A DNA stretch of 64,000 nt from contig NW_027362772.1 of assembly GCF_046119375.1 (NCBI RefSeq), positions 301,258,001 to 301,322,000 of the forward strand, written 5' to 3'. Position numbers and translations under genes: made by a program. Below the pieces are notes generated by a model. The model saw only the letters and a program-made list of their open reading frames with translations. It did no database searches and was not told the DNA's origin. This document shows, piece after piece, positions 2,744 to 24,480 of this stretch; positions within the stretch are counted from its first letter, which is position 1, and the number at the start of each line of letters is the position of its first letter. This DNA comes from Phyllobates terribilis. Taxonomy: Eukaryota.

Positions 2744-5689
2744 CTGGTTCCAGGCGCCGTCCGTGTTCTCGGGGATGGTGATGATCTCGCTGCTGTATTC
2801 ACTGATGACATCACGGCTGTCGGACAAGAGCTGCGCTCTCAGCTCGTAGCAGCATCCGCAGTCAGTGCGCGCGCCATACCTGCAAGCAGAGGCACTCAGC
2901 TTTCCCAGGCTCCTGAATGGCCCATCTGTCTAGCCCAGCCATGCACCCCTCCGCCATACTGACTGCCACCCAGCTTTCCTGGACACCAGTCCTCTCACCA
3001 GTCGCTGACCACGATGTTGGGTTGGGCGTCCAACGCTTCCTCGGTGAATCCTTCCTGAAGGAGATCGATCACTTGGGATTTTTTGCACAATCTGAGAAAA
3101 GAAGATCTCCATCAAATGGATTGTACAGGGGAAAAATATCTGCTTGTTCTAAAAACAGCGCCCCACATGTCCACAGGTTGTATCTGGTATTGCAGATTAG
3201 CAGCATTTAACTGAATGTGACAGAGATGCAATACCAGACACAACCTATGGATGAGTGTGGCGCTGTTCCTGTACAGTCCATTGAATTCTTGGCTAAGACA
3301 GGGGTCAGTCACTTACTCAAAGGATGTAACAAAGTACTTGGAGACCCCGTCAGACGGAAACGGAGCTCCACAGTCTCCCGGGAGATCCTCCACTTTCCAC
3401 TCGTCTCCTCCATTCTCCACTATTTCCCAATGCTCCAGCTCCTCTGTACACAGAGAAAACACAATGTGCATTGTATGACGAAACGTGAGGCCTGGAGTGA
3501 TGGCAGCCTGTATGACAGTCACATGGTCACTGATTGGCTGCAGCGGTCAGGTGGCTAGAATATATATAATGAAATGTAAGGGTCTGGAGTGATGGCAGCC
3601 TGTATGACAGTCACATGGTCACTGATTGGCTGCAGCGGTCAGGTGGCTAGAATATATATATATATAATGAAATGTAACGGTCTGGAGTGATGGCAGCCTG
3701 TATGACAGTCAAATGGTCACTGATTGGCTGCAGCGGTCAGTTGGCTAGAATATATATATATAATGAAATGTAAGGGTCTGGAGTGATGGCAGCCTGTATG
3801 ACAGTCACATGGTCATTGATTGGCTGCAGCGGTCAGGTGACTAGAATATATATATATAATGAAATGTAAGGGTCTGGAGTGATGGCAGCCTGTATGACAG
3901 TCACATGGTCACTGATTGGCTGCAGCGGTCAGGTGGCTAGAATATATATATATAAAGAAATGTAAGGGTCTGGAGTGATGGCAACCTGTATGACAGTCAC
4001 ATGGTCATTGATTGGCTGCAGCGGTCAGGTGACTAGAATATATATATATAATGAAATGTAAGGGTCTGGAGTGATGGCAGCCTGTATGACAGTCACATGG
4101 TCACTGATTGGCTGCAGCGGTCAGGTGGCTAGAATATATTTATATAATGAAATGTAAGGGTCTGGAGTGAAGGCAGCCTGTATGACAGTCACATGGTCAT
4201 TGATTGGCTGCAGTGGTCAGTTGGCTAGAATATATATATATAATGAAATGTAAGGGTCTGGAGTGATGGCAGCCTGTATGACAGTCACATGGTCACTGAT
4301 TGGCTGCAGCGGTCAGGTGGCTAGAATATATATATAGTAAAATATAAGGGTCTGGAGTGATGGCAGCCTGTATGACAGTCACATGGTCACTGATTGGCTG
4401 CAGCGGTCAGGTGGCTAGAATATATATATGATGAAATGTAAGGGTCTGGAGTGATGGCAGCCTGTATGACAGTCACATGGTCACTGATTGGCTGCAGCGG
4501 TCAGGTGGCTAGAATATATATATGATGAAATGTAAGGGTCTGGAGTGATGGCAGCCTGTATGACAGTCACATGGTCACTGATTGGCTGCAGTGGTCAGGT
4601 GGCTAGAATATATATATATATATGATGATACGTAAGGGTCTGGAGTGATGGAGGTGTCAGGTATGAATTTATTTAAGTGTTTATCTGGGAACTACATTTA
4701 GGTTCTTATTTGAAGTGTGGATTCGTTTAGGGGTTTGGTCGGGGGTCCGGGGGTCCTCTCTTATTATGAGTCTGTTCTTATGTGGGGGGATGGTACAAGC
4801 CAGCGGTCAATGCCAGCGCGGCCCGGAATGGCGGATAAAAGGGGACACAGTTCAAGGAACCTCCCAGAGCCGCTGGTTCACCTCCTGTGCCGCGTTATAT
4901 ACCGTCATGGCTGGAAGTTTGGTGACTGACACAATGTCGGTTTTCACAGTTTCTGCCTCATTGTTCTTAGACCTTTTAGTTTCTTTGGTTATTAAATTAC
5001 AATTATGATATTTAAACTTTTATTGACAAATCCATGAAGTTTCTGTAAAGTCTCAATATTCCCAGCGCTGCCCCTTATTCTCCAGACTTCTGCCCTTCGC
5101 CCCCCGGCAGCTGCGCCAGATCCTGACTGATGGCCGCCCCCGTTCTACCTTCATCAAGGGGGCTTCATCAGAGAAAGTAACCTTCCCGCCGTCCTCTGGG
5201 GTCAAGTCTCTGTACTCCGTGCAGAGTTATTTTCTCTGGTGAAGCCCCTTCAGACTGTTTTGGATATTTGGAAGAATTATTGTCCAATGTCAACAGTAAA
5301 GCGTCCGAAGACCATTCATGTGCGGGGGGCTTCTCATCCATGGAGGGGCTCACTGACAATTCTGCCTAAGAACACGGCCAGGAATAAAGAATAAGGTCTA
5401 AACTCCAAGAACAACTTCTCCCATCATCCAGGACAATGTGATGTTGATGCTTCCCCCCCCCCCCCCATGATGGAGACCACCGTGTCATAAGACAAAAATG
5501 GTCTTTTGGCCACGATTGTACACCGACAGTGTGAGGCCCCTATGACAGCTCCTCTTGTCTATGCTCCCCGGGCCTCTGTATGTGACCTGGGGGGGTGCGA
5601 GCTGGATATTTGGGCTATGATATGTCTTCAGCATTGTTAGTTTTGCACTTACCTTCTCCGCAGGGGTTTTTTAGGAGATTTTTCGCCAT
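2744..5689 (-). CDS. fbxo2: FBXO2/Fbs1-like FBA-domain lectin, 3'-partial. Coding exons 5689-5653, 3443-3317, 3091-2999, 2879-2744; last exon expected left of the window
   Basis: Manual splicing gives MAKNLLKNPCGE/EELEHWEIVENGGDEWKVEDLPGDCGAPFPSDGVSKYFVTSFE/LCKKSQVIDLLQEGFTEEALDAQPNIVVSDW/YGARTDCGCCYELRAQLLSDSRDVISEYSSEIITIPENTDGAWNQ. Introns are GT-AG with phases 1, 2, 2, 0. Exon sizes 127/93/136 match the paralog at 23267-24097 (127/96/136). Position and orientation match the FBXO2-FBXO44/6-MAD2L2 synteny. Confidence 0.9.
3491..4651. repeat. ~94-98 bp tandem repeat with a variable (TA)n core, ~12 copies, fbxo2 intron
   Basis: GGTCTGGAGTGATGGCAGCCTGTATGACAGTCACATGGTCACTGATTGGCTGCAGCGG recurs at ~3582, 3680, 3776, 3872 and onward. 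Confidence 0.95.
5158..5500. mobile_element. Degenerate, internally inverted Tc1-like transposase relic
   Basis: Minus strand ~5225-5158 reads TEYRDLTPEDGGKVTFSDEAP. Plus strand ~5285-5390 reads STVKRPKTIHVRGASHPWRGSLTILPKNTARNKE. Both resemble Tc1 catalytic-domain motifs (DW..VIFSDE; TVKHP..IHVWGCF...SLTILPKN). Confidence 0.65.
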
Positions 5690-6724
5690 TTTTCGCTATT
5701 CCCGAGTGCAGCGTTGTCTAAACGGCTTGGAAGGAAAGGGTTAACACTGTAAGCGAAGCTCGATCACTGCAGGACAGATTTCAGCAGCGTAGCAGGAAAA
5801 CTAGGCAGTCCTATGCAAACCTGCAGAGAACACGGGTGATATACCAGATGACAAACTAGAGCCGAGTTGAGCTTGTAAGTGCACTGAGATGAGTTTGTCA
5901 TGTATGTTCTGCTCGGAAGCTTTACATAGGACTGAGGCTTTATTGACCGGAAGCTTCACATAGGACTGCTGGTTGACTTACAGCCTTATCTTATCTCAAA
6001 TATGCACGAAATAAGTAAATGACAAACTCAGCTCTGCTACATCTTTGCATGCAATGATTATTAGTCAGTCGTTATTCCGGCTGCAGGATCTACTCACGGA
6101 CAGTATAGAAGATCGGAGCTGACGGACGTCCGGTGCTGCTCCTTGCGCCGTCTTCCCAGGACTTTATGGTCTACCGTCTGGAATCTGCACCGTAATGTGA
6201 CATCGGAGGCTGCCAGCCTCCTCCCTGCATCATCCTGCAGACAAAGCATCTGCATAGGCGAGGCCGGGGGACTGCGTACCCTGTCCTCATATTGATCCGA
6301 CAGATCAGAGGCCAAGAAAAATGCAGCGGTCGCCACCGCCGGCACCGGAGACCACGTCTGACCTGAAAATCCGGCTCTCTCCGAAACCAGATAGGACTAA
6401 AGAATGCCAGAAATGAATGCCGCCTCGTAACCTCCAGCCCACCCCGCACAATGGAGCCTCTGTGGGAAAACCGGGCAACCAGACCACCAATACCGCCTCC
6501 ACCGGGGGGGTCCCGAATGACCCCTGATGCTGATGCAAGCCATTTATCTCTTGACCTCTACAAAGTTTTGCCATTCCTGACTCTGGAAAAGTTGGGTCAT
6601 ATATTTGTAATGTCGGCCATGTTGACTGTCACCAGTGGTTTAATGTGAAGCCCCCCAACTGTCAAGGCTCAATAACTATCATAGTTTATTTATGATTGGT
6701 CAGCTGAGACAATACACAGGTTTG

Positions 6725-6739
6725 GCCACCAGGTGGCAG
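6725..6739 (+). promoter_or_regulatory. CTCF consensus motif
   Basis: GCCACCAGGTGGCAG matches the CTCF core CCASYAGRKGGC; motif match only. Confidence 0.45.
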
Positions 6740-7129
6740 TTAAGGAGAATGTATTGAAAAAGCCCAAAAAAATATAGTTGCAGGTTTTTTAGGATGCGGC
6801 TAAACCAGGGCTGGACTGGCAAATTCCAGATGGGCCGCTGCGGCCATGAGTTACTTCAATTGCGACACAGTTAACAGCATCAGGGTCCCCAGGAAGCCGA
6901 CACTTAGCAGCCATAGCGGAGCAAAGAGCCGTCGGCTCCCAACTTCGTCACTTACTCCGGCAGGACGCAGGCTACATCCAAGCGGTTGCATCACGCGGCC
7001 CACACAGACCACTGCAAGACCGGATAGAAGGGGAGACTGAGGCTGCGGGGATGGGCACCGGGATTACTTATAACTTATAAGAACATTTAAAAAAAACCTT
7101 TATATTATTGGGCCTGGGAGTCGGATGGT

Positions 7130-10100
7130 GGGGGACATCATACTGTATGGGGGTCTGTGGGGGACATAATACAATATATAGGGACCTCTGCAGCCATCAT
7201 ACTATATGGTTGGCTGTGGTTAACATAATGTGTGGAGGACATACTGTGTGGGGGGCTGTGGTGGACATCATACTGTATGGTGGGCTGTGGTGAACATCAT
7301 ACTGTATTGGAGGCTGTGGTGGACATCATACTGTAGGGGGGCTGTGGTGAACATACAGTATGGGGGGCTGTGGTGGACATCATACTGTATGGGAGGCTGT
7401 GTTGGACATCATACTGGATGGGAGGCTGTGGTGGGCATCATACAGTATGGGAGGCTGTGGTGGACATCATACTGTATGGGAGGCTGTGGTGGGCATCATA
7501 CTGTATGGGAGGCTGTGGTGGGCATCATACTGTATGGTGGGCTGTGGTGAACATCATACTGTATGGGAGGCTGTGGTGGACATCATACTGTATGGGGGGC
7601 TGTGGTGGACATCATACTGTATGGGGGGCTGTGGTGGACATCATACTGTATTGGAGGCTGTGGTGGACATCATACTGTATGGGAGGCTGTGGTGGACATC
7701 ATACTGTATGGGACGCTGTGGTGGGCATCATACTGTATGGGAGGCTGTGGTGGACATCATACTGTATGAGGGGCTGTGGTGGACATCATACTGTATGAGG
7801 GGCTGTGGTGGACATCATACTGTATGAGGGGCTGTGGTGGACATCATACTGTATGGGACGCTGTGGTGGGCATCATACTGCATGGTGGTTTGTGGTGGAC
7901 ATCATACTGTATGGGGGACTGTGGTGGACATCATACTGTATGGGGGGCTGTGGTGGACATCATACTGTATGGGACGCTGTGGTGGGCATCATACTGCATG
8001 GTGGGCTGTGGTGAACATCATACTGTATGGGAGGCTGTGGTGGACATACTGTATGGGGGGCTGTGGTGGACACCATACTGTATGGGGGGCTGTGGTGGAC
8101 ATCATACTGTATGGGACGCTGTGGTGGGCATCATACTGCATGGTGGAATGTGGTGAACATCATACTGTATGGGGGGCTGTGGTGGACATCATACTGTATG
8201 GGAGGCTGTGGTGGACATCATACTGTATGGGAGGATGTGGTGGACATCATACTGTATGGGAGGCTGTGGTGGACATCATACTGTATGGGGGGCTGTGGTG
8301 GACATCATACTGTATGGGGGGCTGTGGTGGACACCATACTGTATGGTGGGATGTGGTGGACACCATACTGTATGGGGGGCTGTGGTGGACATCATACTGT
8401 ATGGGAGGCTGTGGTGGACATCATACTGTATGGGGGGCTGTGGTGGACATCATACTGTATGGGGGGCTGTGGTGGACATCATACTGTATGGGGGGCTGTG
8501 GTGGACATCATACTGTATGGGACGCTGTGGTGGGCATCATACTGCATGGTAGTTTGTGGTGGACATCATACTGTATGGGGGACTGGTGGACATCATACTG
8601 TATGGGGGGCTGTGGTGGACATCATACTGTATGGGGGGCTGTGATGGACATCATACTGTATGGGGGGCTGTAGTGGACATCATACTGTATGGGGGGCTGT
8701 GATGGACATCATACTGTATAGGAGGCTGTGATGGACATTATACTGTATGGTGGGCTGTGGTGGACATCATACTGTATGGGAGGCTGTGATGGACATTATA
8801 CTGTATGGTTGGCTGTGGTGAACATCATACTGTATTGGAGGCTGTGATGAACATCATACTGTATTGGAGGCTGTGATGAACATCATAATGTATGGGGGGC
8901 TATGGTGGACATCACACTGTATGGTGGGCTGTGGTGAACATCATACTGTATGGGGGCTGTGGTGGACATCATACTGTATGGTGGGCTGTGATGGACATCA
9001 TACTGTATGGGGTGTTGTGGTGGACATCATACTGTATGGTGGGCTGTTGTGGACATCATACTGTATGGTGGGCTGTGATGGACATCATACTGTATGGGGT
9101 GTTGTGGTGGACATCATACTGTATGGGGGGCTGTGATGGACATCATACTGTATGGGGGCTGTGGTGGGCATCATACTGCATGGTGGGCTGTGGTGGACAT
9201 CATACTGTATGGGAGGCTGTGGTGGACATCATACTGTATGGTGGGCTGTGGTGAACATCATACTGTATTGGAGGCTGTGATGAACATCATACTGTATGGG
9301 GGGCTGTGGTGGACATCATACTGTATGGTGGGCTGTGGTGCACATACTGTATGGGAGGCTGTGGTGGACATCATACTGCATGGTGGGCTGTGGTGGACAT
9401 CATACTGTATGAGAGGCTGTGGTGGGCATCATACTGCATGGTGGGCTGTGGTGGGCATCATACTGTATGGTGGGCTGTGGTGGACATCATACTGTATGGT
9501 GGGCTGTGGTGGACATCATACTGTATGGGGGGCTGTGGTGGACATCATACTGTATGGGAGGCTGTGGTGGGCATCATACTGCATGGTGGGCTGTGGTGAA
9601 CATCATACTGTATGGGAGGCTGTGGTGAACATCATACTGTATTGGAGGCTGTGATGAACATCATACTGTATGGGGGGCTGTGGTGGACATCATACTGTAT
9701 GGTGGGCTGTGGTGCACATACTGTATGGGAGGCTGTGGTGGACATCATACTGCATGGTGGGCTGTGGTGGACATCATACTGTATGAGAGGCTGTGGTGGG
9801 CATCATACTGCATGGTGGGCTGTGGTGGGCATCATACTGTATGGTGGGCTGTGGTGGACATCATACTGTATGGTGGGCTGTGGTGGACATCATACTGTAT
9901 GGGGGGCTGTGGTGGACATCATACTGTATGGGAGGCTGTGGTGGGCATCATACTGCATGGTGGGCTGTGGTGAACATCATACTGTATGGGAGGCTGTGGT
10001 GGACATCATACTGTATGGAGGGCTGTGGTGGACATCATACTGTATGGGGGGCTGTGGTGGACATCATACTGTATGGGACGCTGTGGTGGGCATCATACTG

Positions 10101-13100
10101 CATGGTGGGCTGTGGTGGACATCATACTGTATGGGGGGCTGTGGTGGACATCATACTGTATGGGGGGCTGTGATGGACATCATACTGTATGGGGGGCTGT
10201 GATGGACATCATACTGTATAAGAGGCTGTGATGGACATTATACTGTATGGTGGGCTGTGGTGGACATCATACTGTATGGGAGGCTGTGATGGACATTATA
10301 CTGTATGGTGAGCTGTGGTGAACATCATACTGTATTGGAGGCTGTGATGAACATCATACTGTATGGGGGGCTGTGGTGAACATCATACTGTATTGGAGCC
10401 TGTGATAAACATCATAATGTATGGGGGGCTATCGTGGACATCACACTGTATGGTGGGCTGTGGTGAACATCATACTGTATGGGGGCTGTGGTGGACATCA
10501 TACTGTATGGGGTGTTGTGGTGGACATCATACTGTATGGTGGGCTGTTGTGGACATCATACTGTATGGTGGGCTGTGATGGACATCATACTGTATGGGGT
10601 GTTGTGGTGGACATCATACTGTATGGGGGGCTGTGATGGACATCATACTGTATGGGGGGCTGTGGTGGACATCATACTGCATGGTGGGCTGTGGTGGACA
10701 TCATACTGTATGGGAGGCTGTGGTGGACATCATACTGTATGGGAGGCTGTGGTGGACATCATACTGTATGGTGGGCTGTGGTGAACATCATACTGTATTG
10801 GAGGCTGTGATGAACATCATACTGTATGGGGGGCTGTGGTGGACATCATACTGTATGGTGGGCTGTGGTGAACATACTGTATGGGAGGCTGTGGTGGACA
10901 TCATACTGGATGGGAGGCTGTGGTGGGCATCATACTGCATGGTGGGCGGACATCATACTGTATGGGAGGCTGTGGTGGACATCATACTGTATGGAGGGCT
11001 GTGGTGAACATCATACTGTATGGGAGGCTGTGGTGGGCATCATACTGCATGGTGGGCTGTGGTGAACATCATACAGTATGGGGGGCTGTGGTGGACATCA
11101 TACTGTATGGGGGGCTGTGATGGACATCATACTGTATGGGGGCTGTAGTGGACATTATACTGTATGGTGGGCTGTGGTGAACATCATACTGTATTGGAGG
11201 CTGTGATGAATATCATACTGTATGGGGGGCTATGGTGGACATCACACTGTATGGTGGGCTGTGGTGAACATCATACTGTATGGGGGGCTGTGGTGGACAT
11301 CATACTGTATGGGGGGCTGTGGTGGACATCATACTGTATGGTGGGCTGTAGTGGACATCATACTGTATGGTGGGCTGTAGTGGACATCATACTGTATGGG
11401 AGGCTGTGGTGGACATCATACTGTATGGGAGGCTGTGGTGGACATCATACTGTATGGGAGGCTGTGGTGGACATCATACTGTATGGTTGGCAGTGGTGAA
11501 CATCATACTGTATTGGAGGCTGTGATGAACATCATACTGTATGGGGGGGCTGTGGTGGACATCATACTGTAGGGGGGCTGTGGTGAACATACTGTATTGG
11601 GGGGCTGTGATGGACATCATACTGGATGGGAGGCTGTGGTGGACATCATACTGTATGGGAGGCTGTGGTGGGCATCATACTGCATGGTGGGCTTTGGTGG
11701 ACATCACACTGTATGGGGGGCTGTGGTGGACATCATACTGTATGGGGGGCTGTGGTGGACATCATACTGTAGGGGGGCTGTGGTGAACATACTGTATGGG
11801 AGGCTGTGGTGGACATCATACTGTATGGGAGGCTGTGGTGGACATCATACTGTATGGGAGGCTGTGGTGGGCATCATACTGCATGGTGGGCTGTGGTGAA
11901 CATCATACTGTATGGGAGGCTGTGGTGGACATCATACTGTAGGGGGGCTGTGGTGGACATCATACTGTATGGGGGGCTGTGGTGGACATCATACTGTATG
12001 GGAGGCTGTGGTGGGCATCATACTGCATGGTGGGCTGTGGTGGACATCATACTGTATGGGGGGCTGTGGTGGACATCATACTGTATGGGGGGCTGTGATG
12101 GACATCATACTATATGGGGGGGCTGTAGTGGACATCATACTGTATGGGGGGCTGTGATGGACATCATACTGTATGGGAGGCTGTGATGGACATTATACTG
12201 TATGGTGGGCTGTGGTGGACATCACACTGTATGGGGGGCTGTGGTGGACATCATACTGTATGGGGGGCTGTGGTGGACATCATACTGTAGGGGGGCTGTG
12301 GTGAACATACTGTATGGGAGGCTGTGGTGGACATCATACTGTATGGGAGGCTGTGGTGGACATCATACTGTATGGGAGGCTGTGGTGGGCATCATACTGC
12401 ATGGTGGGCTGTGGTGAACATCATACTGTATGGGAGGCTGTGGTGGACATCATACTGTAGGGGGGCTGTGGTGGACATCATACTGTATGGGGGGCTGTGG
12501 TGGACATCATACTGTATGGGAGGCTGTGGTGGGCATCATACTGCATGGTGGGCTGTGGTGGACATCATACTGTATGGGGGGCTGTGGTGGACATCATACT
12601 GTATGGGGGGGCTGTGATGGACATCATACTATATGGGGGGCTGTAGTGGACATCATACTGTATGGGGGGCTGTGATGGACATCATACTGTATGGGAGGCT
12701 GTGATGGACATTATACTGTATGGTGGGCTGTGGTGGACATCACACTGTATGGGGGGCTGTGGTGGACATCATACTGTATGGGGGGCTATGGTGGACATCA
12801 TACTGTGTGGGAGGCTGTGATGGACATCCTGCTGTATGGCGGGCTGTGGTGGACATCATACTGTATGGGGGGCTGTGGTGGACATCATACTGTATGGGGG
12901 GCTGTGGTGGACATCATACTGTATGGGAGGCTGTGACGGACATCATACTGTATGGGGGGTTGTGGTGGACATACTGTATGGGGGGCTGTGGTGGACATCA
13001 TACTGTATGGGAGGCTGTGATGGACATCATACTGTATGGGAGGCTGTGGTGGACATCATACTGTATGGGAGGCTGTGGTGGGCATCATACTGCATGGTGG

Positions 13101-14210
13101 GCTGTGGTGAACATCATACTGTATGGGAGGCTGTGGTGGACATCATACTGTAGGGGGGCTGTGGTGGACATCATACTGTATGGGGGGCTGTGGTGGACAT
13201 CATACTGTATGGGAGGCTGTGGTGGGCATCATACTGCATGGTGGGCTGTGGTGGACATCATACTGTATGGGGGGCTGTGGTGGACATCATACTGTATGGG
13301 GGGGCTGTGATGGACATCATACTATATGGGGGGGCTGTAGTGGACATCATACTGTATGGGGGGCTGTGATGGACATCATACTGTATGGGAGGCTGTGATG
13401 GACATTATACTGTATGGTGGGCTGTGGTGGACATCACACTGTATGGGGGGCTGTGGTGGACATCATACTGTATGGGGGGCTATGGTGGACATCATACTGT
13501 GTGGGAGGCTGTGATGGACATCCTGCTGTATGGCGGGCTGTGGTGGACATCATACTGTATGGGGGGCTGTGGTGGACATCATACTGTATGGGGGGCTGTG
13601 GTGGACATCATACTGTATGGGAGGCTGTGGTGGACATCATACTGTATGGGGGGTTGTGGTGGACATCATACTGTATGGGGGGCTGTGGTGGACATCATAC
13701 TGTATGGGAGGCTGTGGTGGACATCATACTGTATGGGGGGCTGTGATGAACATCATACTGTGTGAGAATATTATACTGTATGGGAGGCTGTGGTGGACAT
13801 CATACTGCATGGGGGGCTGTGGTGGACATCATACTGTATGGGGGGCTGTGGTGGACATCATACTGTATGGGGGGTTGTGGTGGACATCATACTGTATGGG
13901 GGGTTGTGGTGGACATCATACTGTATGGGAGGCTGTGGTGGACATCATACTGTATGGGGGGTTGTGGTGGACATCATACTGTATGGGAGGCTGTGGTGGA
14001 CATCATACTGTATGGGAGGCTGTGATGAACATCATACTGTGTGAGAATATTATACTGTATGGGGGGCTTTGGTGACCATCATATTGTGTGTGGAGGCTAT
14101 GACTAACTATCTTACTGTGTGGGGGGCTGTGGTGACCATCATCTTGGGGATCAGCATACCGTGGGACGATCTATGGGGGCCATCATACTGTGTGGGGTAC
14201 TGAGGGGCAT
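7130..14210. repeat. 29-bp minisatellite (GGACATCATACTGTATGGGGGGCTGTGGT), ~240 copies, with higher-order block duplications
   Basis: Direct reading. Identical ORF translations at 9306/9680 (374 bp apart) and 12691/13385 (694 bp apart) show multi-unit duplications. Confidence 0.97.
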
Positions 14211-15188
14211 CATACTGTGTATATGGAGGAATGTGTGGGGACATCATACTATGTGGGGGCATTTTTGGGGCATCGTACTCTATTGGAGGTCATGAAAGGG
14301 GTGTCATAGTGGGTGAGAACACTAAGGGGCTCCAATGGGGGCAAAATAACAGTGGAAATGCTGCAAAACATATCCCTCTCTGTGTGTGTAAAAGTTTGGC
14401 AATACGTGACTGCGGCTGTGTGCTGTTACAGAACTTTTGCTATGGGGCCGTGTGATTTCTATGTACACTCCTGCTCTGAGGCATTATTACACTAAAGAGG
14501 CACTAAGAGGGATTATTATAAGGAGGCACACAAGGACACTATGTCTATAGGATGCTGGATAACTGTAAGGAGGCGCAGGGGAGCATTATTAATTTGAAGA
14601 AGTACAGAGGAAACATTATTACTGTATAGGGTCACAGAGGGGGCACTGCTATTGTGTGGGGCACAAAAAGAGGGTTATATCACTATGCAGGGCACAGAGG
14701 GGCATTTTTACTGTCTAGGGAACTGGTTATAGCACTATAAAGTTTGTGTAGAGGTTGGAATATGAGGAGGGGGCTGGAAAGCAGAAAGACTAAGATTTCT
14801 CTGTGTTACATTTTGCAGGGATGGATGGAAGAAGTGGTCATGGCGGTCTGGGCTGAATGGAAAAGAAAAGTGAAAGTGAATGACAATGTCACTGGTGAGA
14901 GAGGTGCATCTAGGTTTTCTGGCAACCGAGGCAAGAATTTAGTTTGGCGCCCCCCCAAGCACATTTGCGATTTGCACCTTTAGATTGGAGTCCCACTAGC
15001 GTATTGCATCGGATGCGATGAGAGAAGCAGGACGAGAAGCTCGTTGTCAAGTGACAGCAAGTATGAAAATCGCATATGAGTGAAGGAGCCGTGTAATGAC
15101 TGCTGAAACCAGCAAGCTGAGCTGAATCCTGACAGTGAGGATATTACATGCCGTTAGGATTGGCTGCGGGGCTTCATATTATAATTAA

Positions 15189-15546
15189 AGCTCTAGGTCT
15201 GAGATGAAAGTCTGCAGCCACTCTGTGTGGCTGCAGGCTTCTGAATTCTCGCAGCGCATGTGCTGCACACTTTTAGGATTCTCCCTTGCCGGCAGCAAGA
15301 GTGAACGTTCATGAGCACAAGTATGAGATTTGTATACTTCTGGCCACATACCGACTAAACGTGTTCGGCCTCACTCAGTTCATTTTCATTAAGAAAGGCC
15401 ATGTATGTCTAGTCGATATGGGACCACATGTATGCAAATCACTGGCCCGAGAGAACCCTAACAGCGTGCAGAGCACAATGTGAGGATTCAGAAGTCTGCA
15501 GTCACATAAAATGACTGCAGACTCATCACTAACTTGGACAACCCCT
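15189..15546. mobile_element. TTAA-flanked fold-back MITE (T2/Kolobok-like)
   Basis: TTAA at 15185-15188 and 15547-15550. Internal inverted arms AAGTCTGCAGCCACTCTGTGTGGCTGCAGGCTTCTGAATTCTC and GAGGATTCAGAAGTCTGCAGTCACATAAAATGACTGCAGACTC. Confidence 0.6.
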
Positions 15547-15627
15547 TTAATGCTCCTAACATAAATAAAAACATGAGAATTAGTCAGTATCACAAAAAAC
15601 ATTTACATCCAGGTACCTGATAGATGA

Positions 15628-17616
15628 TCAGAAAACTGGATGTCCATCAGCAATAAGCAAAAAATGGCTCTTCTCTATTCGATAAATTGACCTTTCCCAG
15701 GGTAATGAAAAACCCCAGAAAAAAGAAGAGTTCTATACATCATAAACTAAAAGAATACAATCTTTATTCAACAATCTACTCAGAAGTTAACAATGATCAA
15801 ATGCATGATCTGGATAAAAATAAGAAACAGAAAGTGCCTCTAGAGGGCGCTGCAGTTACATCTAGTATAGTGATATTAATCTCCATGGGGAATGCAGGGG
15901 AAGCATATACAAAGTGTCACAATAAACACAGATATTAGCAGTAAACAACACAATATACCGATAAAGAACCAATCGAGCGTTGGTTTAAAAAATATTAGTA
16001 TAAAAAGAATACTGCTTATTCACTGTCAGACACTACTGTTATGTAATGCAAAACAAACTATACATACAGTCCATTGGTGTCAGCGGTGACAGAGTTCCAA
16101 TAATGTTTCAAATAAACTAACATAGCCCTATGTAAACAAGTTCCAAGTCGCTGTCGATGACCACAGAGCCCTCTCACCCTGACGCGCATTTTGCCTTGCT
16201 TCTTCCGGGGACGCTTCCAGAAGAAGCTAGGCGACACGCGCGTCGGGGTGAGAGGGCTCTGCGGTCATCAACACACACATCTTTCAGGTAAAATCTCTTT
16301 TACACCTTTATTCCAGCGGACGTACCCAACTGACTAGGCAATAGTCTCCCAAGAATGCTGACAGCAACTTGGAACTTGTTTACATAGTGTAGCGTCGGCG
16401 TCCCTGCCTCCTGCTAGGCAGGGACGCCGTTCCCCTCACCTCTCCGCTCCGTGCCCGGCGTCTTCCTCCCGCTCTGCTGGCAGCACGCGCTGCTTCCCGA
16501 TCACTGTGCTTAGGGCGCGCGCGTGCTCCTTCTCTCTTAAGGGGGCCGCGCGCGCCGTCCTAAGGAGTCCCCGGCCAATGGCCGGAGGACCTCACCATAT
16601 ATAAGGCACCTCCTCCAAAATGGAGGTGCCCGAGCAATGTTGTTGCAAAGCCTTTCAACTCTGCTTCAGCCCTCAGGTCCCGTTGCCTGATACCTGCCTG
16701 ATACCTGCCTAATACCTGCCTGATACCTGCCTGATTTCTGTCTACCTGCTTGCAATCCTGTGGTCCGACAGTCTGCCTACCAACACCTGCCAGTCTGTCT
16801 ATGGATCAGTCCGCCCGCGGACCAGGAAGTACCTGCCAGATACCTGCCTGATACCTGCCTGCCTGTCCAGAGACTCCTGCCCGCTCACCTGGGAGCGCTC
16901 ATCTGCTACCTGCCAGCTAGCCTACCTGGAGGCTTAGCCGTCACTTGCCGTGACCTCCCGCCTGTCAAGAGACTGTCCCCGTCACTTGCTGTGACCGCCC
17001 TGCCCCTCTACCCTGAGACTGTCCTTGTCACTTGCCGTGTCTACCTGCCCGCCTTCCCTGGGAGCCACCCGCTTCCGTACAAGGACTGCCCCTTTGTATA
17101 GTAGCTCAGAGGTTCCACCTCCCAGACCCGTTACACATAGGGCTATGTGCAATATTATTGGCAGTGGGAGAATCTTGTTATATTAGTTTATGTGCAACAT
17201 TATTGGAACTCTGTCACCGCTGACACCAATGGACTATATGTATAGTTTGTTTTGCATTACATAACAGTAGTGTCTGACAGTGAATAGGCAGTATTCTTTT
17301 TATACTAATATTTTTTAAACCAACGCTCGGTTGGTTCTTTATCGGTATATTGTGTTGTTTACTGCTAATATCTGTGTTTATTGTGACACTTTGTATATGC
17401 TTCCCCTGCATTCCCCATGGAGATTAATATCACTATACTAGATGTAACTGCAGCGCCCTCTAGAGGCACTTTCTGTTTCTTATTTTTATCCAGATCATGC
17501 ATTTGATCATTGTTAACTTCTGAGTAGATTGTTGAATAAAGATTGTATTCTTTTAGTTTATGATGTATGGGACTCTTCTTTTTTTCTGGGGTTTTACATT
17601 ACCCTGGGAAAGGTTA
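15628..17616. mobile_element. Penelope-like palindromic (inverted pseudo-LTR) insertion with a 13-bp target-site duplication
   Basis: Arm 15706-16210 is the reverse complement of 16213-17616 once the solo LTR and a ~90-bp extra segment are removed (mirror ORFs 15892+ and 17411-). Flanked by ACCTGATAGATGA at 15615-15627 and 17617-17629. Hammerhead-like motifs lie at the centre. Family assignment is inferred from these motifs. Confidence 0.7.
16388..17135 (+). mobile_element. Solo LTR (748 bp) with 5-bp TSD CATAG
   Basis: Starts TGTAGCG, ends CCGTTACA. CATAG at 16383-16387 and 17136-17140. TATA-like ATATAAGG near 16599. Confidence 0.88.
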
Positions 17617-18088
17617 ACCTGATAGATGACGTTGTCTCTGGAGTTGTTCTGTTTCTTTTCTTCATCTTGTCCAGACTCCATGATGACTTTTCTCATCCAC
17701 AGCTCGTCTGTGCAGACTTCCATCTTCTCCCGTCTTCTGCAGCACATCCCTACACGATGCCCTTAAAGATACAGTGTCAGTATAATGCTCCTGAATAAAA
17801 AGATCTGTCCCCTCCTGGCTGTGCCCTTATACTGCCCTTCACCCCCACCCCCATGCTACACTTCCACACAGACTACTCAGTTTCTATTCTGTGCCCACTC
17901 ACACTTTTCTCCCCCCATACTGTCTCCTCACACATCCCTCCAGGCTCCCCATACTGTCTCCTCACACATCCCATCATCCTCACTCCTCATACTGTATCTG
18001 CACCATCCCCCCACTCACCATACTGTGTCTGCACCTGTCTCTTCCTTGCTTTCCAAACTGTGTCCTTAATTCTTCCCCATCCCCGTTA

Positions 18089-18225
18089 CACTAAATACCC
18101 CAATCCCCACACTAAATCTCCCCCACACACTAAATACCCCAATCCCCACACTAAATCTCCCCCACACACTAAATACCCCAATCCCCACACTAAATCTCCC
18201 CCGCACACTAAATACCCCAATCTCC
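18089..18225. repeat. 39-bp tandem repeat, ~3.5 copies
   Basis: CACTAAATACCCCAATCCCCACACTAAATCTCCCCCACA; 13-aa period in the ORF track. Confidence 0.85.
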
Positions 18226-19810
18226 CCCATGCTGGCTGTGCCCAGGGCAGATTTCCCACCAGCTCCCCCCCCAGATACGCCTCTGCCTCTGCTGCACAGC
18301 ACACGCTTATATGGTCTGCAGAGCACTGGTGTAACACTGATGTTACCATTATATGGTCACTGTATAGTGGTTGTGATTAATGGTCAGTATGGCGGTATCA
18401 TCACTACTATATATGCAGGAGATATTTTGTGTAGTCTGATGGTATTTGTCAGTTATATTGCAATATTATTATTGCGGTATTATTATTATTATTATTATTG
18501 TTAATAATAGTGAATCTTATGTAGCGGTATTATTCTTGATTTGGGTTTTGTAGTAAATCTTGATTTCCTCTAAGCAGGGTAATATTAGTAATAGAGACCC
18601 AATCTGGGAAAGGGGGGGATGGCCAGCGAGGGGCTGTGTGATTTCAGTCCCAGTTCAGACCCGGTAAACAGCAGCAGGTCGTGAGCCAACGATCACGTTA
18701 TTCTCCTGCTACATCGCAATGTGAATGGGGACATATTGTAACCTCTAGGGTACCAGGACGGCAAGGAGCAATTGGTTACGACTTTTTGGAAAGTCGGCCC
18801 CCGATTCATCAAGCAATTTACACCCCAGCGGAAACTTGCAAAATATTGGACAACTTTTTGGAAAGTGAGCGAGGTTATATATCAGTCTGGGAATCGGCTG
18901 TTCAGCTCACAATGGATTATGTAGCCTGGATACAATTGTAGCAAACCCTCAGCTGTGAGATGTATTAGGTCTGTACTTCTTTTTACAAGCATGCTTCCAT
19001 TCATTGACAGCTAACAGAGATTGTGAAAATGGAGAAACATTGATACAAAGGATCCAGTTCATAATTTGCAGGTTATTTGAAGTCACTTTTTTCTTGTATC
19101 CGTTGACATTTTGGCACCAAATTCTTCATAATGTTGCACGCGTTTCACGAATTTTACGCAGAATCAAAACTGCACTTTATTTTTCCGTAACCTTTTTCGT
19201 GTGAAAAGATGAAGTTTCCGCTGAAACGTCACAGATTTTGAGCAAAAACATCAAAGATGTAGATATAACGACCGGAGGACATTCGAAAAGTCCAACATTT
19301 CTTTGTGCAATGTTGCAAAGTTTTGCGACATTTTTTTTTTTTTGCAACTTGGCAAAACTTTTTGTAAACTTTCAATTGATGAATTATCTGGAAAAAAAAA
19401 AAACTGGAAATCCCAAATCATGTCTACGATGACGAACGTGAACAGAAAAAAAGAAAAGGCAAATGAAATAGACTTAGTAAATTAAAAAGAATAAAGTGCA
19501 ACAACAAAAAAAAAAAGCCACAAATGCAATAATGAATCTCGCGCAAAGTGTATTAAAAAAAAAAAAAAAGTGTCAGAACTTTTCCTGGGACATTTAATTA
19601 TCAGGAAGTGATGACCCCATTGTGCGGCAGATGACTGCGCTCCTATATGGGCAACGATTGGGGTGACAGGACAAGATCCGCCTCTGATGGGAGTTTTCTT
19701 CTTTATTCGCTTCCCCTTTAAATGTCTGATAGTTGTCAGTAGTCACCTGACTCTGATGATGTCATCAGGCTTTTACAGGAAGGAGTGTGAGCAGAGCTGG
19801 GGGTCTGCAC

Positions 19811-19987
19811 GGAGGTAAGAGACCCTGTAGGGAGATAAGAGACCCTGCAGGGAGGTAAGAGACCCTGCAAGGAGGTAAGAGACCCTGCAGGGAGGTAAGA
19901 GACCCTGTAGGGAGGTAAGAGACCCTGCAGGGAGGTAAGAGACCCTGCAGGGAGGTAAGAGACCCTGCAGGGAGGTAAGAGACCCTG
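19811..19987 (+). repeat. 20-bp tandem repeat (GGAGGTAAGAGACCCTGCAG) x9; probably the donor region of a non-coding fbxo6/44 exon
   Basis: Units start every 20 nt from 19811 to 19971; 8 of 9 contain GAG|GTAAGA. Confidence 0.9.
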
Positions 19988-20305
19988 AGGGTCCACAGGG
20001 AGGACTCATTATATGCAAGTGCAGGAATGTAGCAGTGCTGGACTTGTTGTTTAACTCTTTCTGGGCTGTAGGACCAATGTGGGGGCAGGTGGCTTAGAGG
20101 GGCTTTAATTTATCTTTTCTGAATTGTTCAGAGGACATTACCGGGCACAGAAAAGTTGTGGACGATCTCTAAGAACAGACAGTCCTACAGATAGGACCCT
20201 GAGGAGCTTGTGCTTATTAAGGGGTGCAGGCGCTCCATCTCCGCTCACTATATGGCGGGCAGTGACACCACCATATTTATACATTTATCGTTCCCAGGGT
20301 GGAGG

Positions 20306-23300
20306 ATGAGCGATATGGACGCCATCCCGGAAGGAGTGCTGCTAGAAATCCTGTCTGCCGTCCCTGCGCCCGATGTGATCCGTCGCTGCCGCCCGGTCTG
20401 TGCCCTCTGGAGAGACATTATAGACTCGCCCGCTCTATGGAAGACAAAATGTCAGCGGGACGGGTTTATATCAAAGCGCTGCATCCGTAACCCGCCGGAC
20501 TGGAAGATGTTCTACTTTCTACATCTACAGAAGAGGAACTTACTAAAGAACCCGGTGGCTGCAGGTCAGATGGACGAATAGCATGGGGAGGGGGCTGGCT
20601 GCTGGTCAGATGGATGTGTATATAGTGTGGGGAGGGGGCTGGCTGCTGGTCAGATGGATGTGTATATAGTGTGGGGAGGGGGCCGGCTGCAGGTCAGATG
20701 GATGTGTATATAGTGTGGGGAGGGGGCCGGCTGCAGGTCAGATGGATGTGTATATAGTGTGGGGAGGGGGTCGGCTGCATGTCAGATGGATGTGTATATA
20801 GTGTGGGGAGGGGGCGGCTGCGGGTCAGATGGATGTGTATAGAGTGTGGGGAGAGGGGGTCGGCTGCGGGTCAGATGGATGTATAGAGTGTGGGGAGAGG
20901 GGGCTGGCTGCAGGTCAGATGGATGTATAGAGTGTGGGGAGAGGGGGCTGGCTGCGGGTCAGATGGATGTATAGAGTGTGGGGAGAGGGGGCTGGCTGCG
21001 GGTCAGATGGATGTGTATATAGTGTGGGGAGGGGGCCGGCTGCAGGTCAGATGGATGTGTATATAGTGTGGGGAGGGGGCCGGCTGCAGGTCAGATGGAT
21101 GTGTATATAGTGTGGGGAGGGGGTCGGCTGCATGTCAGATGGATGTGTATATAGTGTGGGGAGAGGGGGCCGGCTGCGGGTCAGATGGATGTGTATAGAG
21201 TGTGGGGAGAGGGGGTCGGCTGCGGGTCAGATGGATGTATAGAGTGTGGGGAGAGGGGGCTGGCTGCAGGTCAGATGGATGTGTATAGAGTGTGGGGAGA
21301 GGGGGCTGGCTGCGGGTCAGATGGATGTATAGAGTGTGGGGAGAGGGGGCTGGCTGCGGGTCAGATGGATGTGTATAGAGTGTGGGGAGAGGGGGCCGGC
21401 TGCGGGTCAGATGGATGTGTATAGAGTGTGGGGAGAGGGGGCCGGCTGCGGGTCAGATGGATGTGTATAGAGTGTGGGGAGAGGGGGCTGGCTGCGGGTC
21501 AGATGGATGTGTATAGAGTGTGGGGAGAGGGGGCTGGCTGTGGGTCAGATGGATGTATAGAGTGTGGGGAGAGGGGGCCGGCTGCGGGTCAGATGGATGT
21601 GTATAGAGTGTGGGGAGAGGGGGCTGGCTGCGGGTCAGATGGATGTGTATAGAGTGTGGGGAGAGGGGGTCGGCTGCGGGTCAGATGGATGTGTATAGAG
21701 TGTGGGGAGAGGGGGTCGGCTGCGGGTCAGATGGATGTATAGCGTGTGGGGGGAGAGGGGGCTGGCTGCGGGTCAGATGGATGTATAGCGTGTGGGGGGA
21801 GAGGGGGCCGGCTGCGGGTCAGATGGATGTATAGCGTGTGGGGGGAGAGGGGGCTGGCTGCGGGTCAGATGGATGTATAGCGTGTGGGGGGAGAGGGGGC
21901 TGGCTGCGGGTCAGATGGATGTATAGCGTGTGGGGGGAGAGGGGGCCGGCTGCGGGTCAGATGGATGTATAGCGTGTGGGGGGAGAGGGGGCTGGCTGCG
22001 GGTCAGATGGATGTATAGCGTGTGGGGGGAGAGGGGGCTGGCTGCGGGTCAGATGGATGTATAGCGTGTGTGGGGAGAGGGGGCTGGCTGCGGGTCAGAT
22101 GGATGTATAGCGTGTGGGGGGAGAGGGGGCTGTCTGCGGGTCAGATGGATGTATAGCGTGTGGGGGGAGAGGGGGCTGGCTGCGGGTCAGATGGATGTAT
22201 AGAGTGTGGGGAGAGGGGGCTGGCTGCGGGTCAGATGGATGTATAGCGTGTGGGGGGAGAGGGGGCTGGCTGCATTCAGTATCGGAGTGTCGTATGCGCC
22301 ACAAGCCACTTCTTGATGCTGAACGGTGTCACAGCCCGGTGCAGGCTACACCAGACGGGATACAAATTAATTTTGGGGTCTGAAATAGTTGTGGGGTTCT
22401 GGGTTTGGGGGGGGGACCGTAACATTACAGTAGCAGAAGTGTCATGTGTGGCAGTGTATTGCGGGGGTATTGTTTCCTGCATGATACGGTGTGTGATGGA
22501 ACGGCCATGAGGTTTTAGCTGTGTGTCTGCGTATAGCGCTCACATACGGCCGCAGCGTCGCTGCTTAACGGGTCGATCCCAATATCGTTGGTTATAGGAT
22601 ACTGTGCTTCGCTGCGCTATTTCCAGGAGCCCCATAAACAGAGGTCGAGCATACACGGTGGTCAAACAATGACTGTACACTCGCACATACCGCCATACAG
22701 TGCCCCATCAGCTCAAATGATTCTGCTATAGAGCACCCAGAAAATCCCATCCCACAGAAGCCAAATATGATCACACTGGCAGCACAGTGCCCAAATAAAG
22801 CCGCTATGCATATTCAAATACTGCCATATAGTGTAAGCGGCATTTTTTTTTTTAAAACCGCCCTGTTTCTGGGAAAGGAGGGCTACAACCAATATGGCCG
22901 CCATTAAATTTTACTGCAGCTGCCTCCTTGCCGTATAATGGATCCATCCTCCACCCGGGTCTCATATTATCCATTCAGCAGTTGGGTAATTCCGGGTGAC
23001 CCTCCTGTGGCAGCGGCGGCCATATGGGTTTTTCCTAGAATCGTCTCAGTATCAGGCGGTGGGGATTTTTCGGTGGGGGGCGACCCGTCAGGGAGATGGT
23101 AATTTCCACCAATTATTTATCCTCTTTGTAAGTTCCTCTCGTAAAGTCAAAGTGAAACCAAAAAATCATAAAGGGGGAAACGATCCGGAGCTTTCACTTT
23201 TACGGATTTCGATGGATTTTTCCCGTCCTCACGCCGTCTTATCTTCTGTGCGTTGTTTCTTGTCAGAAAACTTCAAGCACTGGAAAAAAGAAAAAGATGG

Positions 23301-24480
23301 CGGAGACAAGTGGAAGGTGGAGAAACTGCCCGGAACCTACGGCCGGCCATTACCAGACGAGAAGGCGAAGAAGTATTTTGTCACCTCTTATGGGTGCGTG
23401 TATAGGGCCTCCGCCCTGCTGCCGCTCCTTCAGGAATTGCACATTCCGCTCTTGTGCTTTTTATTTCTCTTAGGATTGCACACACCAAAAAAAAAAGCTT
23501 GTATAGGGCGCTGTTCACACACAGCCTATTAGTGACAGCCATACGATTAGATTAGGCGGGGATGCAGCAAACCCATATAATAAAGATGGCGGCAAAGTGG
23601 TTCCTCACTTAGCCCCATATGAGAGCGGCCGTTAATTCAGTCACCCAGGCTACCTAGCAATACGTTCTCACTTTTTGCTCCTCCCCCTTGTCTCTTTCTT
23701 ATTGGCTCCTCCCATTACTCTTTTTTTTTTTTTTTTTTCTTTTCTTTTGGCTTCCAGACTGTGTTTGAAGTCGCAGACCATCGATCTGAAGAAGGAGGGG
23801 TACCCCGCTGAGTTCATGGACGTCGTGCAGCCCAGTATAGTTGTCCGGGACTGGTACGTGATCCGTTTTAAGGAATCTGTTTCCTTTCCGTTTTCTGGGA
23901 AAGCTGGGTGACGACTGATACGGCCGCCATGACAGCACTGTCTCGGGTCCCATCTCCGCAGGTACGCCGCCAGACTCGACTGCGGCTGCCGCTACCAGAT
24001 TCTCGTACAGCTGCTGTCACAAGACAAGACGGTGATGGAGGAGTTTCAGCCGGAGCCGGTGACTATAGAGCAGTGGAGTAACGCCGAGTGGGCCCAGGTA
24101 GCTGTCTGCTGTGTGCGGTTACCGGGGAGCTGTGACCCATAGCAACCAATCAGATTGCTGCTCTTATTCTCCAAAGTGTCTCTGAGAAATGGGAGCTGGA
24201 ATCTGATTGGTTGTGATGAATCCCCCTCGTTGGGCCGCTGATGATCAGATTTCAGGGGTGGATACGGTGATAAGATGGAGTATCGGCTGTTGGGATATTA
24301 CAGCTTTTCTCCTCTCATTATTCCTTACAGATTGAATACACCTTCAGAAATTACGGTCCTGGGGTTCGTTACATATATTTCCAACATGGTGGACAAGACA
24401 CCCAGTTTTGGGCCGGCTGGTATGGAATTAGGGTGACGAACAGCAGTGTGACCATTGATCCCGGCAATCTCAGCGCATGA
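20306..24480 (+). CDS. fbxo6: F-box + FBA-domain protein, FBXO6/FBXO44-like, 255 aa. Coding exons 20306-20564, 23267-23393, 23758-23853, 23962-24097, 24331-24480
   Basis: F-box MSDMDAIPEGVLLEILSAVPAPDVIRRCRPVCALWRDII. FBA domain NLLKNP...KYFVTSYG/LCLKSQTIDL...VVRDW/YAARLDCGCRY...W/IEYTFRNYGPGVRYIYFQHGGQDTQFWAGWYGIRVTNSSV. All introns GT-AG and in frame; TGA at 24478-24480; acceptor TTCCCAG ends at 20297. The choice between fbxo6 and fbxo44 cannot be made by eye. Confidence 0.92.
20555..22270 (+). repeat. ~44-47 bp G-rich minisatellite (GGCTGCRGGTCAGATGGATGTGTATAGAGTGTGGGGAGAGGGG), ~37 copies, starting at the F-box exon 3' end
   Basis: Direct reading; the first unit overlaps the GCAG|GTCAGA donor at 20564/20565. 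Confidence 0.95.

Follow-up and report, generated by a model that had tools for sequence, protein, structure and literature searches.

A probably F-box-less FBXO2 orthologue, and candidate stand-alone glycan-binding protein, in the frog Phyllobates terribilis

The fbxo2 Locus

A stretch of 64,000 nucleotides of the genome of the frog Phyllobates terribilis (contig NW_027362772.1, positions 301,258,001 to 301,322,000), hereafter called the window, carries the gene fbxo2 on its minus strand. FBXO2 (Fbs1) is a textbook E3 adaptor that reads cytosolic N-glycans in endoplasmic reticulum-associated degradation and in the clearance of damaged lysosomes. We consider it likely, judging from sequence comparisons, that the gene of P. 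terribilis encodes an orthologue of FBXO2 that has been cut down to the sugar-binding domain (the FBA domain), lacks the F-box, is conserved, and probably acts as a stand-alone glycan binder.

Four coding exons of fbxo2 are located inside the window and a fifth outside it. The four window exons agree with the RefSeq protein “F-box only protein 2-like” of this species (XP_073511502-505, 175 residues; here P0163) at 12/12, 41/41, 30/30, and 45/45 residues. The genomic locus of this protein (GCA_046119375.1) is 100% identical to window positions 15689-1, and the four RefSeq transcript variants all yield one identical protein. The gene model is that of RefSeq for this species and is not new. Its features in the window are:

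5690-5766, minus strand: conserved 5' leader or promoter-proximal block, core TTAACCCTTT...CCGTTTAGACA
5696-5698, minus strand: in-frame TAG, 9 nt (three codons) 5' of the ATG, conserved in Dendrobates
5653-5689, minus strand: exon A, first coding exon, 37 nt, MAKNLLKNPCGE plus 1 nt of the next codon, from reading of the sequence
3317-3443, minus strand: exon B, FBA domain strands with the Phe177 equivalent (…VTSF), Pfam FBA E 2.6e-6
2999-3091, minus strand: exon C, FBA domain, Pfam FBA E 2.6e-6, 30/30 residues identical to P0163
2744-2879, minus strand: exon D, FBA domain, Pfam FBA 34.2 bits (above cut-off), 45/45 residues identical to P0163

Exon A reads ATG GCG AAA AAT CTC CTA AAA AAC CCC TGC GGA GAA G and is followed by gtaagt from 5652. 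An earlier note on this DNA had claimed a first coding exon of 37 nt with this donor and an in-frame TAG 9 nt upstream of its ATG; both are present, at 5689-5653 (inside the noted span of 5653-5720) and 5698-5696, respectively. The same note predicted an FBA-only protein of ~176 residues, which is correct for the domain content, while the length in RefSeq is 175. Exon A is conserved in the genomes of Dendrobates and Dendropsophus and in hylid-like cDNA, and the acceptor at 3443 preserves the reading frame from it (G/AG GAG CTG ..., the slash marking the exon boundary). Exons were searched singly, and full-length comparisons were made with P0163. Exons B, C, and D cover consecutive positions of the Pfam FBA profile (PF04300), i.e., 20-55, 57-87, and 89-133, with E values from 2.6e-6 to 2.7e-8. 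Exon B aligns to residues 136-177 of mouse Fbs1 and matches the solved structures of FBXO6, FBXO44, and FBXO2. The final exon, coding for 45 residues with VYWKGW, lies 8.9 kb past the left end of the window (L004 24447-24584).

The block directly 5' of exon A (5690-5766) is 89% identical to Dendrobates vs. 72-78% in its flanks, and its core is conserved in Dendropsophus too. In the genomic DNA of all three genera 60-80 nt 5' of the ATG are conserved together with an in-frame stop. Stops equivalent to the TAG of the window occur in Dendropsophus genomic DNA and in the cDNA contigs L002, L003, and L009-L013 that are discussed below.

Searches for an F-box

A profile was made from 22 sequences of the FBXO2/6/44 family, spanning the F-box and the linker, and run with all filters off on every stop-to-stop open reading frame (ORF) in six frames of the whole 64 kb. 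The only F-box found was that of a neighbouring gene, at 20306-20566 on the plus strand (126 bits). The tail of exon A, NLLKNPCGE, matched profile positions 75-87 with 14.7 bits, and the next best hit reached 6 bits (E 1.6). When the window was searched by tBLASTn with the neighbour's F-box exon, a search of the kind that the earlier note had proposed for 5690-20000, this exon itself was the sole match, and FBXO2 of Xenopus, chimaera, bird, and mammal as queries also gave an F-box at 20306-20566 (+) only. The ORFs at 5801-7012 were without a Pfam F-box match at E<=10, as were the close orthologues P0086 (Ranitomeya) and P0088, and the F-box search was likewise empty in the flanks of Dendrobates, Dendropsophus, and further Phyllobates. 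The absence of an F-box, previously claimed for 5690-7100, was thus confirmed by tBLASTn, family profile, and Pfam and could be extended to the whole window apart from the neighbour's exon.

The protein tells the same. FBA is the sole precomputed Pfam family of P0163, the 175 residues of which are fully accounted for by the alignment to Fbs1 125-296; a domain of the F-box families (PF00646 or PF12937, ~45 residues) was not found in it. Two GC-rich ORFs on the minus strand at 6094-6449 (RCRRWRPL, SDVTLRCR) look F-box-like by eye, but they scored 1.6 bits (E 40) with no Pfam F-box, and we attribute the resemblance to chance. Regular expressions for the F-box returned nothing from the six-frame ORFs, but these were too strict, since the true exon of the neighbour was missed as well.

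Transcripts of Related Frogs

Transcript evidence was obtained from assembled RNA contigs of related frogs, a probable hylid and a ranid. The two hylid-like contigs (L002 from SRR5149426 and L003 from SRR5149423), the protein of which clusters at >=90% with that of Dendropsophus ebraccatus, contain a spliced ORF of 175 residues, and the exon junctions of the L002 cDNA coincide exactly with the exon boundaries in the window. In-frame stops are found in these contigs 12 and 52 codons 5' of the ATG. The ranid contigs, from five runs (L009-L013), carry leaders that reach 393 nt in length, with a stop two codons ahead of the ATG, and the ranid protein is indexed in 126 blocks of run assemblies. None of the seven contigs holds an F-box in any frame. 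Both of these frogs express the truncated gene.

Selective Constraint and Predicted Glycan Binding

The ratio of non-synonymous to synonymous substitution rates (dN/dS), summed over the whole codons of exons A-D, is 0.13 between the window and Dendrobates (dS 0.18) and 0.15-0.18 between the window and the hylid-like cDNA (dS 0.6-0.7). These values indicate purifying selection on the truncated gene, which is common to neobatrachian frogs.

Residues 3-174 of P0163 form one continuous alignment with mouse Fbs1 125-296 and with the isolated sugar-binding domain (SBD) constructs 1UMH and 1UMI (239 bits). Phe177, Tyr279, and Trp280 (mouse Fbs1 numbering), which make essential hydrophobic contacts with chitobiose (PMC4603797), are identical in P0163 in the alignment with 2e31_A; Phe177 is encoded by exon B within the window and the other two by the last exon beyond it. 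The isolated domain of human Fbs1 (92-296), without the F-box, binds N-glycans and serves as a capture reagent (PMC5457524). It is likely that the FBA-only protein of the frog binds N-glycans too and, because the residues that contact chitobiose are kept, its ligand would be the Man3GlcNAc2 core. The F-box is the module that docks to SKP1 and, since it is missing here, the protein is not expected to dock to SKP1 or to serve as a substrate adaptor of an SKP1-cullin-F-box (SCF) ligase. Its predicted targets are N-glycans exposed to the cytosol, be they on ruptured organelles or on glycoproteins that are misfolded or have been retrotranslocated. As a stand-alone lectin it might hold or shield glycoproteins, or compete for them with the F-box-bearing paralogue next to it; alternatively, it may mark damaged organelles.

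Orthology and Distribution of the Short Form

Exon B, compared with 1.8 billion representative proteins, led to “F-box only protein 2 isoform X1” of Dendrobates tinctorius, which starts with MAKNLIKNPCGEE and is matched at residues 14-54; the “F-box only protein 2-like” of P. terribilis falls in the 90% cluster of this protein. Among solved structures P0163 scores highest with FBXO2 (239 bits), followed by FBXO6 (213) and FBXO44 (204). It carries PF04300 as precomputed family, and its orthologue in Ranitomeya (P0086, ~94% identical over exons A-D) matches this profile with 230.6 bits over positions 7-175 of 175. The clade in the tree, the best structure, and the nearest database names all point to FBXO2. 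Orthology with NCCRP1 is not indicated: none of the 76 matches at E<=1e-10 is named NCCRP1 and the nearest are all FBXO2, in a comparison where the tree holds no NCCRP1 sequences.

A word search with the Dendrobates protein, together with cluster listings, revealed FBA-only orthologues in at least 11 neobatrachian families, mostly with 173-176 residues. Forms of this length occur in the Dendrobatidae, Aromobatidae, Leptodactylidae, Eleutherodactylidae, Bufonidae, Hylidae, Myobatrachidae, Ranidae, and Limnodynastidae (Mixophyes, 176 residues), the genera being Dendrobates, Ranitomeya, Phyllobates, Anomaloglossus, Engystomops (several copies), Leptodactylus, Eleutherodactylus, Bufo, Hyla, Dendropsophus, Mixophyes, Pseudophryne, and Rana. 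Gastrophryne (Microhylidae) and Hyperolius (Hyperoliidae) have FBA-only models of 180-227 residues. FBXO2 with both F-box and FBA is found in all early-branching frogs sampled (Ascaphus, Discoglossus, Xenopus, Rhinophrynus, Pelobates, and Leptobrachium) and in reptiles, birds, mammals, sharks, rays, and chimaera; for Xenopus this is consistent with a survey that lists Fbxo2 among the F-box genes. In ray-finned fishes FBXO2 is FBA-only in teleosts and bichirs (175-181 residues), and the paddlefish model is also without an F-box. The statement in the earlier note that teleost fbxo2 is short was accurate (175-178 residues, FBA only) and applies to bichirs as well. A search with the F-box region of Pelobates matched only early-branching frogs and no neobatrachian FBXO2-type F-box, although with few candidates its reach was limited. 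None of the species sampled has both a long and a short FBXO2-type gene.

The Pseudophryne corroboree isoform X2 (P0099, 264 residues) is a hybrid RefSeq model, in which an F-box of the FBXO6/44 type precedes an FBA of the FBXO2 short type. Its F-box is 63% identical to window 20306-20566 and 41-46% to FBXO2-type F-boxes, and its FBA is 84% identical to the short form of Mixophyes. It is either a mis-joined model or a case of real exon sharing between tandem genes.

Origin of the Truncation

In a maximum-likelihood (ML) tree of 58 proteins, built from 173 columns of the FBA part alone, the FBXO2 clade (97/88, starred) consists of cartilaginous fishes (100/99, starred), the short forms of ray-finned fishes (100/99, starred), and tetrapods (99/93, starred). 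Within the tetrapods amniote FBXO2 is sister to that of frogs (83/94) and, within the frogs, the neobatrachian short forms (84/94) stand beside the F-box-bearing early-branching frogs. The state of the F-box changes three times on this tree, one change being the Pseudophryne hybrid. The short form appears to be derived, since an F-box is present in sharks, chimaera, amniotes, and early-branching frogs, and since the tree nests the short form of frogs in tetrapod FBXO2. The suggestion in the earlier note that an FBA-only protein may be the ancestral state finds no support here.

The F-box was probably lost once in the stem of the Neobatrachia, to which most living frog species belong, and separately in ray-finned fishes. 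Provided that the gene is real, two independent losses seem to us likely. The fuller scenario, i.e., losses in the stem Neobatrachia and in ray-finned fishes at the same exon position, after which the FBA domain remained under purifying selection for very long, is put forward as a tentative possibility, with the balance somewhat against it.

The Pelobates gene suggests how the frog short form may have arisen. Its first coding exon extends from the ATG through the F-box and ends with ...AAA AGG AAG ACA AAT CTC ATC AAG AAC CCC TGT GGG GAA G/gt; the counterpart in the window, ...AAA followed by the exon A letters given above and gt, has the same donor and phase. Exon A is, by this comparison, what is left of the ancestral F-box exon, namely the 37 nt at its 3' end, in agreement with the earlier note: the F-box exon of Pelobates ends in ...NLIKNPCGE G/gt at the same donor. 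The ATG of P. terribilis (5689-5687) aligns with the AGG Arg codon of Pelobates in a basic KRK patch before NLIKNP (L006 ~10214), so that the new start codon may stem from a single substitution of G by T. Upstream of this ATG the resemblance to an F-box is gone. In the 10-kb flanks of Pelobates FBXO2 and Polypterus fbxo2 no neighbouring gene was called.

Alternative Explanations

A different history would be that of an ancient short paralogue, in which the FBA-only gene is old and common to ray-finned fishes and modern frogs, with no truncation specific to frogs. The start of the protein is indeed near-identical in the two groups (MAKNLLKNP in Menidia and in P. terribilis; M[AS][KR]NLLKNP in teleosts), and a tree in which all short forms make up one clade is not rejected by the approximately unbiased (AU) test (p=0.24, lnL difference 9.1). 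The ML tree, however, places the frog short forms within tetrapod FBXO2 and the fish ones in a separate starred clade, the outgroup (sharks, chimaera) has the F-box, and the short gene occupies the position of FBXO2, head-to-head with an FBXO6/44-like gene. This history would also be costly: because no sampled species has both forms and early-branching frogs are paraphyletic, it demands many reciprocal losses, at least four of them in the early-branching frogs alone, with amniotes in addition. We regard it as unlikely.

Still less probable, in our view, is that the protein remains an SCF adaptor through a hidden or borrowed F-box, encoded by an exon outside the window or by an exon of another gene. 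The Pseudophryne model P0099 joins an FBXO6-like F-box to FBXO2-short FBA exons, and the 5' structure of the Phyllobates gene is a prediction. However, the upstream 58 kb contain, over both strands, no other F-box than that of the nearby exon, which is oriented the opposite way. In three genomes all candidate acceptors are separated from the ATG by in-frame stops, and the Dendropsophus site equivalent to the TAG/CGA acceptor opens with TGA. Moreover, the seven cDNA contigs of two frog lineages all lack an F-box and the four RefSeq variants give the same 175-residue protein. That the gene is a decaying remnant, transcribed as a pseudogene without protein function, is the least probable of all, and very improbable. 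The defining domain has been lost, there is a partial copy that has no exon A at a distance of 243 kb (L008), and the introns are swollen by satellites; but the frame of 173-176 residues is intact in most neobatrachian families sampled, dN/dS is low (0.13-0.18), the splice sites, start context, and glycan-contact residues are conserved, and the ranid orthologue recurs in the 126 blocks mentioned above.

Some observations weigh against a conserved, F-box-less FBXO2 that binds glycans on its own and arose by separate loss in frogs. Candidate acceptors in the leader (...cctgcag/T near 5766 and ...cttacag/T near 5746) and at 5696 leave room for a conceivable upstream non-coding exon. The transcript support comes from other frogs, and for P. 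terribilis both the start of transcription and the arrangement of 5' exons are predicted. The Pseudophryne hybrid makes exon borrowing conceivable where the genes lie in tandem. Given the p value of the AU test, the tree alone is not decisive. Finally, some neobatrachian orthologues have Phe, Cys, or Gly in place of Tyr279, and sequence alone cannot settle glycan binding by the frog protein because FBXO44 keeps similar residues and yet does not bind sugar (PMC4603797).

Comparison with Known FBA Proteins and Implications

Mammalian FBXO2/Fbs1 (1UMH, 1UMI, 2E31) shares with the frog protein the orthologous FBA domain, aligned end to end with 239 bits, the exon boundaries, and Phe177, Tyr279, and Trp280. 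Unlike it, the frog protein has no PEST region, F-box, or linker (mouse residues 1-124) and, hence, no surface on which SKP1 could dock; in extent it corresponds to the laboratory SBD construct and not to native mammalian Fbs1. FBXO2 of ray-finned fishes (teleosts, bichirs) is also FBA-only and has the start motif M-x-[KR]-NLLKNP and the first-exon donor in common with the frog gene, but it forms a clade of its own and its loss of the F-box was probably independent. NCCRP1 (FBXO50) is another FBA protein, the F-box of which is degenerate in mammals or undetected in fish (PMC3210139), and provides a precedent for drift away from SCF. It is, however, a different paralogue, with ~31-36% identity to FBXO proteins and on a different human chromosome, whereas the frog gene is FBXO2-type by tree, best matches, and neighbourhood. 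A role of FBXO2 that does not depend on ubiquitylation is described in PMC11192832, which credits Yoshida 2007 and Nelson 2007 with a non-SCF Fbs1-Skp1 heterodimer that acts as a chaperone and suppresses glycoprotein aggregation. That chaperone is full-length Fbs1 bound to Skp1, whereas the frog protein appears to have no means of binding Skp1.

The FBA-only architecture is already visible in precomputed Pfam assignments. Kallio et al. (2011; PMC3210139) discussed a missing F-box for NCCRP1 only, and our literature search found no paper remarking on an F-box-less FBXO2 in fishes or frogs. The more interesting claim than the gene model is the probable convergent loss of the F-box. An FBXO2 that naturally consists of the lectin half only and is maintained by selection, in most frog families sampled and in ray-finned fishes, offers a natural experiment that separates ligase-dependent from ligase-independent roles. 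The name “F-box only protein 2” is misleading in frog and fish genomes: models of FBXO2 function that use fish or frogs, such as those of the inner ear or of neurodegeneration, would not put an SCF adaptor to the test. If the F-box was indeed lost twice, the conserved core job of FBXO2 would be SCF-independent glycan binding, as holdase, sensor, or decoy, and the ubiquitin-ligase adaptor activity would be dispensable in most vertebrate species.

The Divergent Neighbour and Repeats of the Locus

The other features of the window are:

20306-20566, plus strand: F-box exon of the neighbouring FBXO6/44-like gene, Pfam F-box-like E 3.3e-10, F-box E 6.2e-6, family profile 126 bits
23264-24480, plus strand: FBA exons of the neighbour (~23264-23393, 23760-23858, 23961-24097, 24328-24480), from paralogue tBLASTn, Pfam, and mapping of L002
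7240-14040, no strand: 29-bp satellite, ~235 copies, 6.8 kb, between the divergent genes
3492-4651, no strand: 96-bp satellite, 12 copies in intron 1, single copy in Dendrobates (L001 10851-10963)
1-2362, no strand: 54-bp minisatellite, >43 copies in the last intron, running off the left end of the window

The divergent, full-length fbxo6/44 neighbour of the earlier note is, thus, an F-box plus FBA gene on the plus strand at 20306-24480. It lies head-to-head with fbxo2, an arrangement that is the same in Dendrobates and presumably also that of human FBXO2 and an FBXO44/6-type gene. The F-box exon of the neighbour ends with NLLKNPVAAG and not with the usual NPC[GA]EE. A 46-bp minisatellite starts at the donor of this exon (exon end and repeat together at window 20556-22279) and is 75-83% identical to that of Dendrobates (L001 1-2612); since both genera have it, it predates the split of Phyllobates and Dendrobates.

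The start codons of the two genes are 14.6 kb apart, and half of this interval is the 29-bp satellite. Dendrobates tinctorius lacks this satellite at the collinear position (L001 8022-8032), so that it seems to be a lineage-specific expansion that pushed the two promoters apart. In the hylid-like frog a single 1.7-kb contig (L002/L003) comprises both spliced cDNAs head to head, that of the neighbour (252 residues, F-box plus FBA) and that of the short gene (175 residues), and in L002 only 212 nt separate their start codons. A bidirectional promoter used by both genes, with 5' ends that overlap, would account for this, as would a join made during assembly. The 212-nt spacer of L002 was compared with the promoter of the neighbour near 19.7 kb, since a match would place a non-coding exon 1 of fbxo2 there; this idea is not supported, as the alignment score only equalled the best of 30 shuffles, and the spacer had no significant match in the window. 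An exact 14-nt match of the spacer, at 6042-6029, recurs at other places in the window and has the opposite orientation in Dendrobates, and is attributed to chance or a repeat.

A partial duplicate of fbxo2 is present in P. terribilis ~243 kb away in opposite orientation (L008; ~96% identical, equivalent to window 4650-1). It begins inside the intron-1 satellite and holds exons B to E, without exon A and without an F-box. Its RefSeq model (172 residues, XP_073511500.1) starts at an intronic ATG with MHIVFSLCTEE, and the same letters are found at window 3471-3441. The last intron of fbxo2 is ~11.5 kb long vs. ~3.5 kb in Dendrobates, where isoform X1 (206 residues) reads into the repeat of its own last intron and lacks the final third of the FBA domain.

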